Positions 6,225-11,949 of a stretch of DNA of 64,000 nt are shown in pieces. Below the pieces are notes generated by a model that saw only the letters and a list, made by a program, of their open reading frames with translations, did no database searches and was not told the DNA's origin. The DNA is from Trichosphaerium sp. ATCC 40318. Lineage: Eukaryota > Protista > Tubulinea. Position 1 is the stretch's first letter; every line of letters begins with the position of its first letter. Position numbers and translations under genes: made by a program. The stretch is taken from contig JALMLS010000062.1 of assembly GCA_038496445.1 (NCBI GenBank), positions 674,870 to 738,869 on the forward strand. The letters run 5' to 3'.

Positions 6225-6749
6225 ACCTTTTGCCAATTCACAAAAAAAAGTGTAAACATTTTTCAACCGAACCAAAAAACAAACCTGAACAGACCCTATT
6301 GGCATATTTTGTAAATTGTACCACAATATCCATGCAATAAATGTACAGATCCTACCTGTAAAAAGTGTCTTTTGAGTCATTGATCAAAAAAAGTTGGACA
6401 GAAAAGCAATTTCACGTATTTCTATGGTACACGTGTCAAAATGTGAAGGTACGTATGTACTGCTTACTTTAGCTCTACGTTGAACATTATTTTAGCAATT
6501 GGACAGTGTGTTTCACGTTTATAGTAAACCTGTTTCTGCTAAAGCTCAATTTCATGGATGGCTAATATATTTAGCAATGCTTATTGTTTTATGCACGCAC
6601 ATTAACATGCGCTGTCTATTCGACTAACTCACAAAATGTGTTTCTTGTTGAAATTGGAACTGTAAACAATGCAACCTAACTATGAAAACGAATAGTAGTA
6701 AAACTTGGGTACTTTATTTAGTTTTACATTCGATTGGAGTGCCAAGATC

Positions 6750-7142
6750 TCAGCAGCTTCCACAAGCAGCTTCGCTCCAGCAACACCATTTATCACTTCT
6801 TATGCGAAAGCATAGTGGAGATCCAGGGTAGCAGTATGCAGTTGAACCTATCAAAATAAACGTGAGATACTGAACAACACATTTTTCTTTTCACATACAT
6901 TGACCATTCTTTTCACGACCACGTTTACGCCATCCAGGAGGACACCATCCATTTGTATCACATGTTTCACCACACAACAGTGGTCCTTGCTATACAAACA
7001 ATAGTTAGAAAAGGAAATGTAAGAGGAGATCTTGACTTACTTCAGTTGCTCGTTTAGCTCTTTCACTGAGCTCATTAGATTGGACCGCCAAGGCAACAGT
7101 TAATGCCATGAGTACAAAAGCGAAAAGTGTTGTTGTTTGCAT
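6750..7142 (-). CDS. Secreted Cys-rich prepropeptide, copy 1 (96 aa, 3 exons)
   Basis: Spliced product is MQTTTLFAFVLMALTVALAVQSNELSERAKRATE-QGPLLCGETCDTNGWCPPGWRKRGREKNGQCSTAYCYPGSPLCFRIRSDKWCCWSEAACGSC*. It has a hydrophobic signal peptide, a KR site and two GT-AG introns at the same positions as in copies 2 and 3. Confidence 0.9.
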
Positions 7143-7348
7143 TGTTCTATGAGGTGTGGTTGTTCTTGTTATGGTTTGTATTTATGACTGGAAGGTCAAT
7201 ATGATTTAAGTCTCCATTTCACTTGAATTTTACGGTAAATTATATTTGTTTCACTATCGTAAGTCTACTTTGCAAAACCCAGATAGAATAGTGTTGTTGT
7301 TTTAGTATATTGATGACTAACGATCATGGATAACAAGTGTTGGATTTA
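7140..7348. repeat. Inverted duplicate: 7140-7263 matches ~10005-10125 and 7264-7348 matches ~8585-8660
   Basis: Direct reverse-complement comparison, e.g. cttacgatagtgaaacaaatataatttaccgtaaaattc and gttttagtatattgatgactaacgatcatggataacaagtgttggatt. Confidence 0.9.
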
Positions 7349-7391
7349 GCGAAAAAGAAATGTGGTAAACAGCTTATGATACTTTTATTCA

Positions 7392-7412
7392 GTGAATATG
7401 AAGACTTAAATC
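7392..7412 (+). promoter_or_regulatory. Conserved upstream motif of the peptide genes (GTGAA(T)ATG(G/A)AGACTTAAATC)
   Basis: The same motif lies ~60 bp upstream of the ATG in all three intact copies (7203-7222 minus, 7392-7412, 10046-10065). The copy 2 promoter is otherwise dissimilar. Confidence 0.5.
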
Positions 7413-7476
7413 GTCTAAGTGCATTCAAACAAAACCAATTTACAAAACCTCAACCAACAACAAACCTCATCTTCAA

Positions 7477-7897
7477 ATGAAAACAACAATATTATTTGTA
7501 TTGGTGACTTTGGCATTGATACCAATTGCCTTGACGACCCAATCTAAGCATGCTCAAGACTCTGAAGAAATGCCAGATATGCACGAAAAGAGATCAACTG
7601 AGGTATGTCGACACTTGCTACTTTTACATTGTATTGTTAATTAACATGCGATTTAGCAAGGACCACTGTTGTGTGGCGAAACATGTGATACAAATGGATG
7701 GTGTCCTCCTGGATGGCGTAAACGTGGTCGTGAAAAGAATGGTCAATGTATGTGAAAATCAAATATTGGTAACACTTCTTTAATACTAACCTTTATTAGG
7801 TTCAACTGCATACTGCTACCCTGGATCTCCATTATGCTTTCGCATAAGAAGTGATAAATGGTGTTGCTGGAGCGAAGCTGCTTGTGGAAGTTGCTAA
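7477..7897 (+). CDS. Secreted Cys-rich prepropeptide, copy 2 (104 aa, 3 exons)
   Basis: Exons 7477-7602, 7657-7747 and 7800-7897. MKTTILFVLVTLALIPIALTTQSKHAQDSEEMPDMHEKRSTE is followed by the identical 62-aa, 10-Cys mature region. Confidence 0.92.
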
Positions 7898-8045
7898 GAT
7901 TGCAAAGCCACACTTGTTGTGCCACATATCATTGTAAAGAATCAATAAAAGTGCCAACAAGTAGAATCAGACTCAGTTTACTAACTAAAGTGCTGGTTGT
8001 ATCAAAATGTAGCATAAATATCAGTCACAATTCTTCGGCCAATGA

Positions 8046-8582
8046 GGAATTTCGACTCGTAAAAAGTTGAGCGTAAAAATAATATGGTTCAGAGATTTGG
8101 TCTTTTTTTGGTTTATTTTTACGCTCAAAACTTTTCACTCGTAATCGTAATTTACATGTAAATGTTGTTAGTGAACTACTGAGGCTTAACCTATGTTTTA
8201 TTAAGTTTACAAGGTTGTTAATAATGACAGTGCTGTCACAGTGATTGAAAAAAAACCAATTGATTCACTTCTATTGATGAGAGCCTACTGAGCACTTTCT
8301 AATGACTTTAAAGTATAACGTTGCAAAAACAGCGTTAAACAACGTCTCAATGTATCTGAAGAGCTTGTATAAGGACCAATAACAAGTGGTGATCTTTTTT
8401 TGTATTAATGACTGTATTGTGCAACCAATAAATAAAGTGTTTTTGAATGAGTTACGATTTACGAGTGAAAAGCATTGAGCGTAAAAAAAACGTAAAAAAC
8501 TAAACCCAAAACTGTCGTAAAACTAAGTCCATTCTTTGAAACCAGCAATTTTTACGCTCAGCTTTTTACGAGTCGAAATTCC
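8046..8582. mobile_element. Non-autonomous TIR element (MITE), 537 bp
   Basis: Termini GGAATTTCGACTCGTAAAAAG(T/C)TGAGCGTAAAAAT in inverted orientation, with imperfect inverted similarity extending over 100 bp. Flanks are TGA/TTA (near-match 3-bp TWA-type TSD). No coding capacity. Confidence 0.82.
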
Positions 8583-8637
8583 TTAATCCAACACTTGTTA
8601 TCCATGATCGTTAGTCATCAATATACTAAAACAACAC

Positions 8638-9161
8638 TATCTGGGTTTTGCAAAGTAGAGGACTTCACAGTACGGCATGCCGCTGTATTCGAAAAATACG
8701 TTGTTGGCGAACGCTTTTTTGCACGTGTGGCACGTGAAACAATCTGGATGCCACGTGGCGCCCAAAGCGCTAATGTAGGATCCAAATATTTGTTTGTTAC
8801 AGGACTTATGCGAAAAGAACGTTTAATATCTCCGTGGCCTTACTAGAAAGAACGTACTTGCACATTGGAGCAAAACCAGAGTAAAAGCACGATTGGCAGT
8901 ACGGCTTGCCGGTCCTTGTTTTTCAAAAAAGTTACCTCCTGGGAACGTACGGATACAATTCATGCAAACAAAGCAGTTCATGTGCCACAGTTTTCCCAGT
9001 GCACTTACACCTTGTCCTTGCACCACCTTTTGAGGGATTAATGGATGACTCATAAAATAGAGATACTCAGTACTGGTTGTACTCTGCACAGACATCGGTG
9101 GAGCTGTGCGAGGCGTTTTATTTGCAGATATATCATTTAAGAGGTCCTCGAGTTCATCCAT
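8638..9161 (-). pseudogene. Paxillin-like two-LIM-domain gene, probably decayed
   Basis: N-terminal LD-like motif MDELEDLLNDI and LIM motifs ALGKLWHMNCFVCMNC, GKPYCQSC and ALGATWHPDCFTCHTC..GMPYCE. Frameshifts are needed near 9095 and 8912, splice sites are off-phase, and Zn ligands are replaced (CAEY, YCEVLY). Confidence 0.75.
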
Positions 9162-9381
9162 TGTGTATTAATTGTTTAGTTATTCGTACAACTTTTTTGG
9201 GGTTACCTCCCTTAACTAGCACTGCAATTACAACTAACCACTGCAACAAGGACTGCCGTGCGCTATTAAACGCGTCCTAACTAAACCAGTGACTCAAGTA
9301 TGGAAGGATACAGTTTTTTTATTGTTTTTCCTAACATGATCATTTCGACAAAAAAAGGCTAGTAGTAGCAATAACCGTTGG

Positions 9382-9884
9382 CTAAGTGTTGCGTTGAGAT
9401 ATAAAGCGCTTCAACACTGATTGTTGCAATGGCCTATGTTCCAATTGCTTGAGCGCTTCGGACACGTCGAACCATTTGCGGCTTCTAAAGGTGCTTTCAG
9501 GAAAGTCTTTGAGCTCTTGCTCTACGTGCATGCCGTAGAAGTGCGTTCTTGTTTTCTTTTTGTGGTTTTCAAATACACCCAACGTGCATACAATGCTACC
9601 TTTTACGCCAGCTTCTTCGTACGTCTCGCGTGTAGCTCCATTCATGGGGTTATCGAACTCATCTAATTCTAAGGCTCCTAAATGAAAACTGTTACGGTAA
9701 AATTCTATTCTATCTCTCTTCGTTTGTTACACCGTTAGATCGCACCTGCAGGTATGATAAACTTGTTGCGGTTGCTTGAGCTCGAAATGAGCAACACGCG
9801 CCGTTCATCAGCGGAAACCAGCAAACAGCCAGCACGTGCGCGCCAACCATCAATTCTATCCGGTTTTGATACAACTGGCTTCAT
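9382..9884 (-). CDS. Nudix hydrolase, diphosphoinositol-polyphosphate phosphohydrolase (DIPP/NUDT3-like)
   Basis: Two exons: RARAGCLL..VLLISSS...FIIPAG|ALELDE....GATRETYEEAGVKG (Nudix box), then FPESTFRSRKWF. Confidence 0.88.
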
Positions 9885-10122
9885 CGTAAGCAACAGGCTC
9901 GAAGTCTACACGTTATGTAAAATAGTGAGGACCATGAATTGTAGCTTAAAAACATCTTGCGTGGTATTCTTGGCGAGTGTTTATGGTACACGCTTTTTAA
10001 GTTGCTTACGATAGTGAAACAAATATAATTTACCGTAAAATTCACGTGAAATGGAGACTTAAATCATCTCCTTTCAGTCATAAATACAAACCATAACAAG
10101 AACAACCACACCTCATAGAACA

Positions 10123-10529
10123 ATGCAAATAACAACACTTTTCATTTTTGTACTCATGGCATTAACTGTTGCCTTGACGACCCAATCTAAGCACGCTCAA
10201 GACTCTGAAGAAATGCCAGATATGCACGAAAAGAGATCAACTGAGGCACTTGCTACTTCTACTTTGTACATGACTAACATACGATTTAGCAAGGACCATT
10301 GTTGTGTGGTGAAACATGTGATACAAATGGATGGTGTCCTCCTGGATGGCGTAAACGTGGTCGTGAAAAGAATGGTCAATGTATGTGAAAAGAAAAATAT
10401 GTTGTACAGTATCTCACGTTTATTTTATTAGGTTCAACTGCATACTGCTACCCTGGATCTCCATTATGTTTCCGTATCAGAAGTGATAAATGGTGTTGCT
10501 GGAGTGAAGCTGCTTGTGGAAGCTGCTAA
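10123..10529 (+). CDS. Secreted Cys-rich prepropeptide, copy 3 (103 aa; first intron GC-AG)
   Basis: MQITTLFIFVLMALTVALTTQSKHAQDSEEMPDMHEKRSTE is followed by the identical mature region, with only synonymous differences. Intron 10246-10289 starts GC. Confidence 0.82.
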
Positions 10530-10749
10530 TATCCACAAATGTGTAAAACTTGAAATAAAGTTCCCAGCTACAAATTCTTGTTTCATTTCAACAAGTGGAA
10601 TAAGATTACAGTTTACTCACCAAAGTGCTGGTTATATCAAAATGTAGCATAAATATCAGTCATATATGTTTTGGTCTCAATGAACTATTACATGCTTTTG
10701 TTGCACTAACAAGTCGTAGTTGTATAAATTTAATCCATTAAGTTTCAGT

Positions 10750-11090
10750 TCAAGGTGATCCACGCTTACAGCAAATTGCCTCATTCCAGCAGCACCTCTA
10801 GGTACTAGTACCTTGTTATTAATGATCCAGGGTAGTAGCATACTAGTATGGACAATTTTGTTTGATAACAAATAATTGTAGCTCTTAATGAATTTGTTCC
10901 TACTCCATCCAGGAGGAAGCTGTATTAGGAACATGCTTACTATAAGGCGTTAGCAAGGTAGACTGTTCAAGAAATAGTTGACTTACTTCTTATGCTCACA
11001 GTTCTAAGCATTCGCTCGCTGAGCTAATCAGATTGGACTACCAAGGTAGAACTCAATGTCATAAGGACAAAGGTCAAAAGGATTGCATTG
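10750..11090 (-). pseudogene. Diverged, decayed copy 4 of the Cys-rich peptide family
   Basis: Remnants ILLTFVLMTLSSTLVVQSD*LSER (GAG>TAG relative to copy 1), a GTAAGT donor at the homologous position, PPGWSR, YYPGS and RCCWNEAICC. Confidence 0.8.
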
Positions 11091-11949
11091 CCTTCAGTTA
11101 TATCTTATCCAATAAAATATGCACACAATTAAAGTAATTGTTCGACACTTTCTCATGCAGCTTCATCTTTTGCCCATCTTACTCTATGGAGTTGGTATCC
11201 ATGTATCGTTTGTCTATCTTCCCATCACAAACCAATGTTTACAAAAAAGAATCGGAACTGGATCTGTGTTAAGCACCAACAAACTTTAATTCAAGGAACT
11301 ATGGATATGCAGTTGTTTCGAAAATAGAAATACTGAAAAAACATAGAGAATTTAGTAAAGGCCATCGGAGACACCTTAGCAAGCAACGGTTGTGTCTGTA
11401 CATACAAAATTTGTAGGTCGCTATATATGGCGTTATATCTCGGACTCTCACGGAGCCCGTTAAGTCTCGGATCATTATCTTCATGTTAACATAACGTTCA
11501 TATTTCGCAAGTTTTGTTTATTGGCCGCCGGGAACACTAATTAACGCGTCAAAGACACGTAGTATATTTACATCAACATTAAACAACTGCAACAAGGTTT
11601 TAGGCGGGGAAACTTTTTTTTTTGATGGCGCGTGTCATACGACACTAGGGCACCATTAGAAGTTTGGCTCTCTTACTGGGTTTGTTACGGGACAACTATT
11701 TTCCTTTTTGGGCTAGAGGCAGTACGGGATACCATTCTCGTGAATAAATGTAAGCTCCATAATTCCACTCATGGAAAGTGCCGAGCACGTGTGATCACCA
11801 GTCACGTAAAAAACAGCAAATTCACGTGAACTGTTTTTGGGTAAAGCAAGAAGTTTACCCATTTCTCACAAGCATCACAACACTTTAACAAATAATAAAC
11901 TAAATAGACGGAGGAACTAAACAAAGAGTAGATTTACCCTGACAAAAGC

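Follow-up and report, generated by a model that had tools for sequence, protein, structure and literature searches.

Among the major grazers of bacteria are the free-living amoebae, from which, to our knowledge, very few secreted effector peptides are known. The nearest described counterparts of an effector such as the one proposed here are the amoebapores and acanthaporin, small disulfide-stabilised effectors of bacterivorous amoebae that bear a signal peptide and are phagosomal or extracellular (PMC5198042). The amoebapores are saposin-like, helical and have 6 Cys, and a histidine pH switch is described for this group. By organisation, the closest systems are the cysteine-rich prepropeptides of the defensin and toxin type processed by kexin or furin, in which a signal peptide, a short propeptide (anionic in a number of them) and a KR site precede a small, cationic, disulfide-rich mature part. 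In many families of antimicrobial peptides and toxins it is this mature part that diversifies. Among protists, the prepropheromones of Euplotes are likewise secreted Cys-rich precursors with signal, pro and mature regions.

In a stretch of 64,000 nucleotides from Trichosphaerium sp. ATCC 40318 (the window) we analysed a group of small genes that share the order of the kexin/furin-processed precursors, their multi-copy genes and the presence of a convertase in the genome. The acidic propeptide was found here in one of two precursor types only, and the diversification known from conotoxins and defensins is reversed: the prepro part varies and the mature part stays the same. The peptide differs from the amoebapores in having 10 Cys; its half-models contained short strands only, at low confidence. 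It has no His and no counterpart of the pH switch, and neither exon product was similar to any PDB chain at a meaningful level.

Gene Structure

The features are listed in Table 1. The family has four copies in the window, the genes A, B and C and the decayed copy D. The initial annotation had described three intact three-exon genes, each coding for a signal peptide, a propeptide ending in KR-(A/S)TE and an identical region of 62 residues. By translation of the loci and tblastn, the products of exons 2 and 3 were the same in A, B and C, and exon 1 of all three carried the signal peptide and the propeptide with its KR-(A/S)TE end. The coding exons of the three genes were intact as well; the description was slightly too strong for gene C, whose intron 1 has a GC donor, so that "intact" is unproven for this copy.

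Table 1: Features of the peptide genes, in positions of the window.
Feature	Position	Strand	Description
Gene A	6750-7142	minus	3 exons; signal peptide, propeptide and 62-aa peptide
Gene A, exon 1	7142-7041	minus	A-type signal peptide, short propeptide; ends ...AKR-ATE
Gene A, intron 1	7040-6990	minus	GTAAGT..AG
Gene A, exon 2	6989-6899	minus	
Gene A, intron 2	6898-6848	minus	donor GTATGT, acceptor AG
Gene A, exon 3 with stop	6847-6750	minus	
Spacer of the A/B head-to-head pair	7143-7476		shared divergent promoter
Gene B	7477-7897	plus	3 exons; signal peptide, propeptide and 62-aa peptide
Gene B, exon 1	7477-7602	plus	B-type signal peptide, acidic propeptide; ends ...EKR-STE
Gene B, intron 1	7603-7656	plus	GTATGT..AG
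Gene B, exon 2	7657-7747	plus	
Gene B, intron 2	7748-7799	plus	GTATGT..AG
Gene B, exon 3 with stop	7800-7897	plus	
Gene C	10123-10529	plus	3 exons; signal peptide, propeptide and 62-aa peptide
Gene C, exon 1	10123-10245	plus	ends ...EKR-STE
Gene C, intron 1	10246-10289	plus	44 nt, GC..AG, begins GCACTT
Gene C, exon 2	10290-10380	plus	
Gene C, intron 2	10381-10431	plus	
Gene C, exon 3 with stop	10432-10529	plus	
Copy D	about 10760-11092	minus	decayed pseudogene, tail-to-tail with C

This intron has 8 nt fewer than that of gene B at the donor. The GC donor recurs in one other copy of the family (G000:C12:655887), and the two copies that have it differ at only 2 sites over exons 2 and 3, both silent. 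Exon 1 of gene C is chimeric, with a B-like propeptide placed behind an A-like start and upstream region (inverted repeats I1, I2, and I5). In copy D the start frame is lost and the translation contains stops and frameshifts. Its remnants are LLTFVLM..VVQSD*LSER from exon 1 (the exon-1-like tblastn match at 11003-11080 has an internal stop), PPGW from exon 2, and YYPGS and CCWNEAICC from exon 3.

Peptide and Precursor

Throughout the family, exons 2 and 3 code for a Trp-rich peptide of 62-63 residues with 10 Cys and a net charge of +3. The translation of the genes in the window reproduced the annotated spacing C-x3-C-x5-C-x14-C-x4-C-x6-C-x8-CC-x5-C-x2-C, as well as the 4 Trp and the net +3 (8 K/R against 5 D/E) counted in the 62-residue peptide. 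All 10 Cys are retained in every variant without stop codons, and the same holds for a basic loop, W-R-K/R-R-G-R-E-K, between Cys3 and Cys4.

In the signal-peptide region, the mean Kyte-Doolittle hydropathy of 15-residue windows rises to 2.5-3.0 (2.8-3.0 for the hydrophobic cores LFAFVLMALTVALAV and ILFVLVTLALIPIAL), and small residues, V/T-Q-S, come next. Exon 1 closes with KR-(A/S)TE whichever the prepro type, and does so in nearly all stop-free copies; the dibasic site is kept although the A-type and B-type propeptides differ. Convertases of the kexin/furin type are encoded in the genome: the P domain PF01483 gave 4 matches above the cut-off, and locus L050 has, besides this domain, the boxes of a kexin-type subtilase (SWGPNDDGKT, WASGNG, and GTSTSAP). 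The predicted organisation is that of a secretory prepropeptide processed at a dibasic site by kexin or furin, which is an organisational class and not a family by homology.

Transcription and Splicing

Public RNA contigs carry both splice junctions of the family. Contig 6 of X1 reads ...GAAAAGAGATCAACTG-AG-CAAGG..., in which exon 1 runs directly into exon 2; aligned to gene C, the end of a B-type exon 1 is joined to exon 2 at 10288/10290. In contig 12 of X4, exon 2 is joined to exon 3 at GT..AG, and the contig enters exon 3 of C at 10432. Both contigs contain mismatches and so come from copies other than C. Gene B is covered by an X1 RNA contig on 7556-7602 and by an X4 contig that lies on 7684-7747 and continues into exon 3. 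No intronless copy of the family was found in the genome, and the adjoining LIM and Nudix genes are also spliced in the same RNA runs. This evidence is at contig level and gives neither the level of expression nor which copies are used. The multigene family, lineage-specific and numbering about 46 copies, consists of real genes that are transcribed and spliced.

Family Size, Pairs and Selection

The amplification that had been deduced from the window was confirmed on the scale of the genome, where it is strong. Exon-2 and exon-3 matches numbered at least 50, and 46 full-length copies of exon 2 were catalogued among these small three-exon genes. Considering that some small contigs are possibly redundant haplotigs (C518~C99, C584~C15, and C480~C152), the haploid number could be nearer 40. 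The copies are dispersed over at least 20 contigs; several are pseudogenes, and three loci carry fragments of the exons in fusion with a Lys-rich repeat. Every exon-1 match in the genome fell within a gene of the family, and no other mature peptide was found behind the prepro exon.

Thirteen head-to-head pairs were found, each made of one gene with an A-type and one with a B-type prepro region around a shared promoter spacer, and these pairs have been copied as units. The A/B spacer of the window shares 72-91% identity with those of other pairs. On either side of it a TATA-like box of the GAGACTTAAATC type lies some 70-80 nt before the ATG, and this motif is conserved over 42 aligned upstream regions. 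In 5 of the 13 pairs the 3′ part has been converted from arm to arm. Neither a transposase nor terminal repeats bounding the pairs were found, nor was a linked receptor gene seen next to them.

Exactly the peptide of the window is encoded by 27 copies, with dS of 0.18 and dN of 0. In the set of 43 copies that are complete for exons 1-3 and free of stop codons within the aligned parts, dN/dS was 0.076. The 30 distinct nucleotide versions of exon 2 give 6 protein versions and the 36 of exon 3 give 7; third codon positions account for 18 of the 27 columns that vary in exon 2 and, in exon 3, for 21 of 31. Around the unchanged peptide, introns (p 0.25-0.38) and exon 1 (p 0.20-0.23) have diverged by 20-38%. 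Taking into account the silent divergence together with the diverged introns and exon 1, the peptide is kept by purifying selection, and gene conversion in some pairs aids its constancy. The third-position bias and the RNA contigs with both junctions also mean that the family is not a chance pattern. The constancy of the product under selection fits the amplification for dosage that had been proposed.

Searches for Relatives

The cysteine framework had not been recognised at the outset, and no described family was matched in Pfam, PDB, HMMER, word-index, or ESM Atlas searches, made with the product of each exon (halves of 31 aa), for which sensitivity to known 10-Cys domains is limited. In Pfam, hmmscan with E up to 10 gave 0 families for the single products of exons 2 and 3 and of either type of exon 1. 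The word-index protein search found no match for two natural frames, one of 135 aa holding exons 1 and 3 (L009:1331-1735) and one of 51 aa holding a copy of exon 2 (L039:1522-1674). With the product of exon 3 as query, HMMER returned three matches among 1.84 billion representative proteins, to RCC1 repeats and to two repeat proteins without a name; these were rejected as spurious, since in tandem-repeat proteins weak repeated matches sum up. By phmmer against all PDB chain sequences, exon 3 had no match and exon 2 only AVR-Pik and MBD6, at an E of about 1, which is noise.

The feature search of the ESM Atlas gave, for both halves, best values of 0.84-0.85, under the lead level of 0.9, and neighbours that were only generic (small Cys-rich toxin or lantibiotic). 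The degenerate DNA patterns of K-W-C-C-W-x-E-A-x-C-G and C-D-x-N-G-W-C-P-P-G-W had 0 matches in contigs of metagenomes, viruses, and prokaryote genomes. AlphaFold2 models of the two 31-aa halves, folded singly, reached pLDDT of 62 and 73.5 and showed nothing but short strands, which is no evidence on the whole fold; the better of them found nothing in PDB by Foldseek. The Trichosphaerium genome paper (PMC10521059) does not mention the terms cysteine, antimicrobial or secreted, and a full-text literature search on Trichosphaerium cysteine-rich peptides and amoebozoan disulfide antimicrobial propeptides gave nothing relevant.

The CS-alpha-beta signature, in which CxxxC is paired with CxC, is absent, CxxxC being present and the terminal element being CxxC only. 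Hevein and the chitin-binding type 1 domain (PF00187) have the 8-Cys pattern C-x8-C-x4-CC-x5-C-x6-C-x3-C-x3-C. With hevein and other lectin-like peptides of 8-10 Cys such as tachycitin, the C-terminal half shares only a local CC-x5-C-G and flanking aromatic residues; however, x8 precedes the CC here and x4 in hevein, other spacings differ too, and the halves had no Pfam or PDB match. In Ly6/uPAR proteins and three-finger toxins, which also have 10 Cys, CC is formed by the 8th and 9th and is followed by x4-C-N, whereas here the pair is made by Cys 7 and Cys 8, with another two Cys behind it and a C-terminus that does not read C-N; exon by exon, Pfam gave no match. The Euplotes prepropheromones, similar in layout, are allelic and vary between mating types rather than occurring as tens of identical genes, and no sequence similarity to them was found.

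Proposed Function

The explanation that we favour, with a probability of roughly 55%, is that of a spliced, many-copy family of secreted, KR-processed peptides which may act as effectors. The precursor would enter the secretory pathway and a convertase of the kexin/furin type would cut it after KR, releasing a peptide that would measure about 65 aa (about 7 kDa) and hold five predicted disulfides; the high copy number would serve bulk production. An invariant mature peptide behind a variable signal peptide and propeptide is the reverse of what arms-race toxins show; it argues against a diversifying toxin of that kind, and we read the product as an effector made in bulk. The peptide may act outside the cell or in the phagosome on a target that is conserved, for instance the membrane or the wall of microbial cells, as an antimicrobial or prey-killing agent whose cationic mature part would be masked by the acidic propiece. 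We hold this role to be the most likely one, at odds somewhat below even. Two points speak against it: a peptide that acts on membranes would have only a modest net charge with +3, and the invariance of the mature part is unlike many antimicrobial and toxin families.

The same dosage and invariance would also be expected of a stoichiometric, self-assembling material. Trichosphaerium makes a test of calcite spicules glued by secreted material (PMC11575492), and about 46 copies of an unchanging product are typical of bulk structural products, so that the peptide could serve as a bulk unit or a cross-linker in the flexible, fibrous covering or in the organic spicule matrix. We consider this unlikely, given that the matrix proteins of biominerals are usually acidic, repetitive or of low complexity, features that this peptide lacks, and that a KR-processed, knot-like peptide of 7 kDa would be an unusual structural subunit. 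Small five-disulfide peptides are often canonical protease inhibitors. The conserved basic loop, probably exposed, could accordingly be a substrate-like reactive loop against proteases of the trypsin or convertase type, with the peptide needed in molar excess; but it may just as well be a patch that binds membranes or a second site of processing, and no inhibitor family was matched exon by exon in Pfam or in PDB sequences. We hold inhibition to be improbable. The chances are slightly poorer still for a pheromone or autocrine factor with a conserved receptor. A ligand constrained by its receptor would fit the strictly conserved mature part and the layout, which resembles that of ciliate prepropheromones, but signals rarely need about 46 genes, mating pheromones usually differ by type where here there is essentially one product, and no linked receptor gene was seen at the side of the pairs.

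It could also be argued that there is no functional peptide, only a repeated DNA unit, transposon-spread or recently duplicated, whose open frames persist through recency or gene conversion. The dispersal over contigs, the pseudogenes, the fragments fused to the Lys-rich repeat and the conversion within pairs agree with such a unit. Silent-site divergence and spliced RNA nevertheless refute this reading for the most part, the divergence of introns, spacers and exon 1 around the same peptide and the lack of a transposase or terminal repeats at the pairs speak against it too, and we give it almost no credence.

As an orphan, Trp-rich peptide of five disulfides whose protein sequence is unchanged over so many genes, the product of the family is a strong candidate for something abundant in the cell, an abundant and functionally important product, be it a new antimicrobial scaffold or part of the mineralised cell covering. 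More tentatively, at odds clearly short of even, the family may represent a new, lineage-restricted class of disulfide-rich peptides with a fold outside PDB, encoded by some 40 or more genes of identical product and serving as broad-spectrum antimicrobial or prey-lysing agent or as building block of test and spicules. It offers a clean natural case of dosage amplification in which head-to-head pairs and gene conversion act together with purifying selection. The peptide is small enough for synthesis or expression and for mass spectrometry, and is thus directly testable. A further cut at the conserved internal RKR might give a form of two chains linked by disulfides.

Gene Structure and Expression

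Reading of positions 6500-11400 and translation of the four loci found there gave the gene structures (see the table). Genes A and B are separated by a spacer of 334 bp, and two unrelated minus-strand genes, LIM-domain and Nudix, lie between this pair and gene C. Genes A, B, and C each begin with an exon for a hydrophobic signal peptide and a propeptide, which ends in KR-ATE in A and in KR-STE in B and C; the 62 residues common to all three come from exon 2, which starts in phase 0, and exon 3, which starts in phase 1. This is the layout proposed in the initial annotation, whose figures for Cys spacing, number of Trp, and charge are matched exactly. By the repeat analysis, the coding parts of the window copies are 94-97% identical in DNA.

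Gene C is chimeric, with an upstream region and exon-1 start that match those of A (inverted repeats I2 and I5) and a propeptide that matches that of B (repeat D3). Its first intron starts with GCACTT and not with GT because 8 nt were lost relative to B. The three genes had been called intact, which is true of the coding exons of A, B, and C; the GC donor makes it less certain for C as a gene. A 44-nt first intron with the same GC start is shared by two members (window 10246-10289 and G000:C12:655843-655886, on another contig), both with undamaged coding exons; the two are recent null copies unless GC-AG introns are in use here. Copy D, with its start shifted and its frame interrupted by stops and frameshifts, is a pseudogene.

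The RNA material consisted throughout of Logan contigs, which carry neither expression level nor copy assignment. A 132-nt contig of run X1 covers exon 2 with GAAAAGAGATCAACTG directly before it; taken with the AG in which exon and intron both end, this gives the exact exon 1-exon 2 junction (...K-R-S-T-E/Q-G-P...). In run X4, a contig of 164 nt passes from exon 2 (up to 7747) over GT..AG into exon 3 (starting at 10432) and reaches the stop codon. Mismatches indicate that both contigs are from other copies of the family. Spliced contigs of the adjacent LIM and Nudix genes occur in the same runs as well. Since there is no intronless copy in the genome, every exon 2/3 pair being 45-77 nt apart, the junctions come from RNA, and the spliced transcript that had been suggested as a check is thus found at both junctions.

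Features of the peptide gene family and its surroundings
Feature	Location	Strand	Remarks
Gene A	7142-6750	minus	translation; head to head with B
Gene B	7477-7897	plus	translation; head to head with A
Gene C	10123-10529	plus	translation; 2.2 kb past the A/B pair
Copy D	about 11092-10760	minus	translation; tail to tail with C
Upstream box, gene A	about 7205-7222	minus	
Upstream box, gene B	about 7390-7405		
Upstream box, gene C	about 10046-10060		
Foldback element, MITE-like	8045-8583		545 bp; just downstream of gene B; terminal inverted repeats of about 110 nt
LIM-domain gene	8637-9161	minus	between B and C; spliced contigs in X1, X2
Nudix-hydrolase-like gene	9351-9899	minus	between B and C; spliced contigs in X1, X2
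Exon-3 fragment by Lys-rich repeat	G000:C25:340996-341076		
Exon-3 fragment by Lys-rich repeat	C3:769035-769112		
Exon-3 fragment by Lys-rich repeat	C131:123566-123646		
Kexin/furin-type proprotein convertase (L050)	G000:C36:151711-154881		intron-rich; subtilase boxes and P domain

Family Size and Selection

The products of exon 2 and of exon 3, searched in six frames against the entire 70.3-Mb assembly (642 contigs), matched at least 50 places each. Among the matches listed we catalogued 46 full-length exon-2 copies; in 43 of them all three exons are present and the aligned parts are free of stop codons. The window peptide is encoded exactly by 27 copies, and N28R is the sole difference in 5. 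A sub-family of about seven copies carries T12E, K22R, N28R, S55N, and A58V, a GQTC C-terminus, and 63 residues. The ten Cys and four Trp are kept in every stop-free variant. Clear pseudogenes or fragments are those on C601, C185, C480, C152 (15037), C32, C25, C3, and C131 and window copy D; those of C480 and C152:15037 have an identical 1-nt insertion. Both exon-1 types, used as queries, returned only the already catalogued peptide genes, so the prepro cassette is not shared with another peptide and the exon-2/3 copy count is not an artefact of listing. Some of the smaller contigs are possibly redundant haplotigs, and the haploid copy number could then be nearer 40. Exon-3 fragments adjoin the same Lys-rich repeat (KKKNKKTKK...) at three unrelated loci (L047-L049), where a repeat or mobile element seems to have captured the 3′ portion of a peptide gene.

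Most of the variable columns are third codon positions: 30 distinct exon-2 nucleotide sequences give 6 protein sequences, and 36 of exon 3 give 7. By Nei-Gojobori counts per exon, then summed, dS was 0.18 and dN 0 (dN/dS 0) in the 27 identical-peptide copies, and 0.31 and 0.024 (dN/dS 0.076) in all 43. Divergence is far greater elsewhere in the genes, promoter spacers included, and amounts to 25-38% in introns and 20-23% in exon 1. Gene conversion helps to keep the copies the same; a protein that has not changed while silent sites differ by 16-25% is a hallmark of strong purifying selection, and a non-functional repeat is essentially excluded.

Head-to-Head Pairs and Promoters

The genome holds 13 head-to-head pairs, mostly of an A-type and a B-type prepro gene. 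Each arm has its nearest relative in another pair (d 0.015-0.10), and the arm-to-arm distance within a pair is 0.055-0.21 (0.10-0.21 except on C55, where the two arms are closest to each other); the pair is thus an old unit, copied whole. In 5 of the 13 pairs the arms are mutual nearest neighbours over exon 2, intron 2, and exon 3 (d 0.004-0.033), whereas the 5′ parts have diverged by 9-40% (9% in the C55 pair and 33-40% in the other four), which shows arm-to-arm gene conversion in these five. The window pair A/B gave no such signal (d 0.105), and the 3′ part of A matches C instead of B (inverted repeat I1).

Promoter spacers differ by 9-28% between pairs. About 70-80 nt upstream of each ATG there is a conserved box, GAGACTTAAATCAT / AAGACTTAAATCG, common to the A-type and B-type promoters of almost every copy; its form in the divergent sub-family is the near-palindrome GTGATTTAATTCAC. 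This box is probably the family's TATA-like core promoter. Beyond the foldback element lies an inverted partial copy of the A/B spacer (8582-8660 against 7264-7349), about 90% identical along some 86 nt and 98% identical in a 55-nt core (7295-7349 / 8582-8636); it looks like the remnant of another, broken gene pair.

Search for Relatives

Relatives were sought exon by exon, with single exon products as queries. The Cys framework had not been recognised at first reading, and these searches brought no credible relative. Pfam gave no match for any exon product, nor did word-index protein searches with natural open frames; PDB chain sequences gave none for exon 3, and for exon 2 only noise at E of about 1. 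HMMER with exon 3 against 1.84 billion representatives returned repeat proteins only, which are additive noise. Scores of the ESM Atlas feature search were under lead level, degenerate DNA patterns had 0 matches in metagenome, viral, and prokaryote contigs, and half-peptide AlphaFold models, of low to moderate confidence, had no structural match. The published Trichosphaerium sp. draft genome (70.87 Mb, 710 scaffolds) is described without mention of such peptides (PMC10521059), and further literature searches found none. This is a real, well-defined orphan peptide family of a familiar kind, the secreted cysteine-rich prepropeptides.

Processing and Possible Role

In the signal-peptide cores, 15-residue stretches reach mean hydropathies of 2.5-3.0. 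The proprotein-convertase P domain had four above-threshold matches in the genome, one in a convertase gene (L050) with the kexin-type boxes SWGPNDDGKT, WASGNG, and GTSTSAP and the others on C188, C27, and C11. Taking into account these cores and the genomic convertase, cleavage after KR is plausible and would release a 65-residue peptide with ATE or STE at its N-terminus. A second conserved basic cluster, W-R-K/R-R-G-R-E-K, in the long Cys3-Cys4 loop may serve as an additional site of cleavage, as a reactive loop, or as a patch for binding.

A secretory, predicted dibasic-processed peptide with five predicted disulfides, expressed from tens of genes with a constant product, is well supported at the gene level. 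The pattern is opposite to conotoxin- or defensin-style diversification: the mature part is conserved and the prepro part variable, which suggests that the target or partner is conserved and that the peptide is needed in quantity. Considering that the peptide is cationic, Trp-rich, and disulfide-stabilised, that the B-type propiece is acidic, and that the host is a bacterivorous or algivorous amoeba, we rank an antimicrobial or prey-directed effector first, with a probability of roughly 35-40%. A structural or test/spicule-matrix component comes next and is unlikely; a protease inhibitor is less likely still, and a self-signal is the least probable of the four.

Neighbouring Elements

As single-stranded DNA, the foldback element folds with -102 kcal/mol (z = -12). 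At least 4 full-length copies, 88-99% identical, are on C41, C582, C204, and C274, and on these contigs they have no association with peptide genes. Within the LIM gene, RNA contigs of X1 and X2 are without 5 letters of the genome at 8907, which suggests an assembly indel or a frame-shifting allele. At 9869, X1 has G for A.
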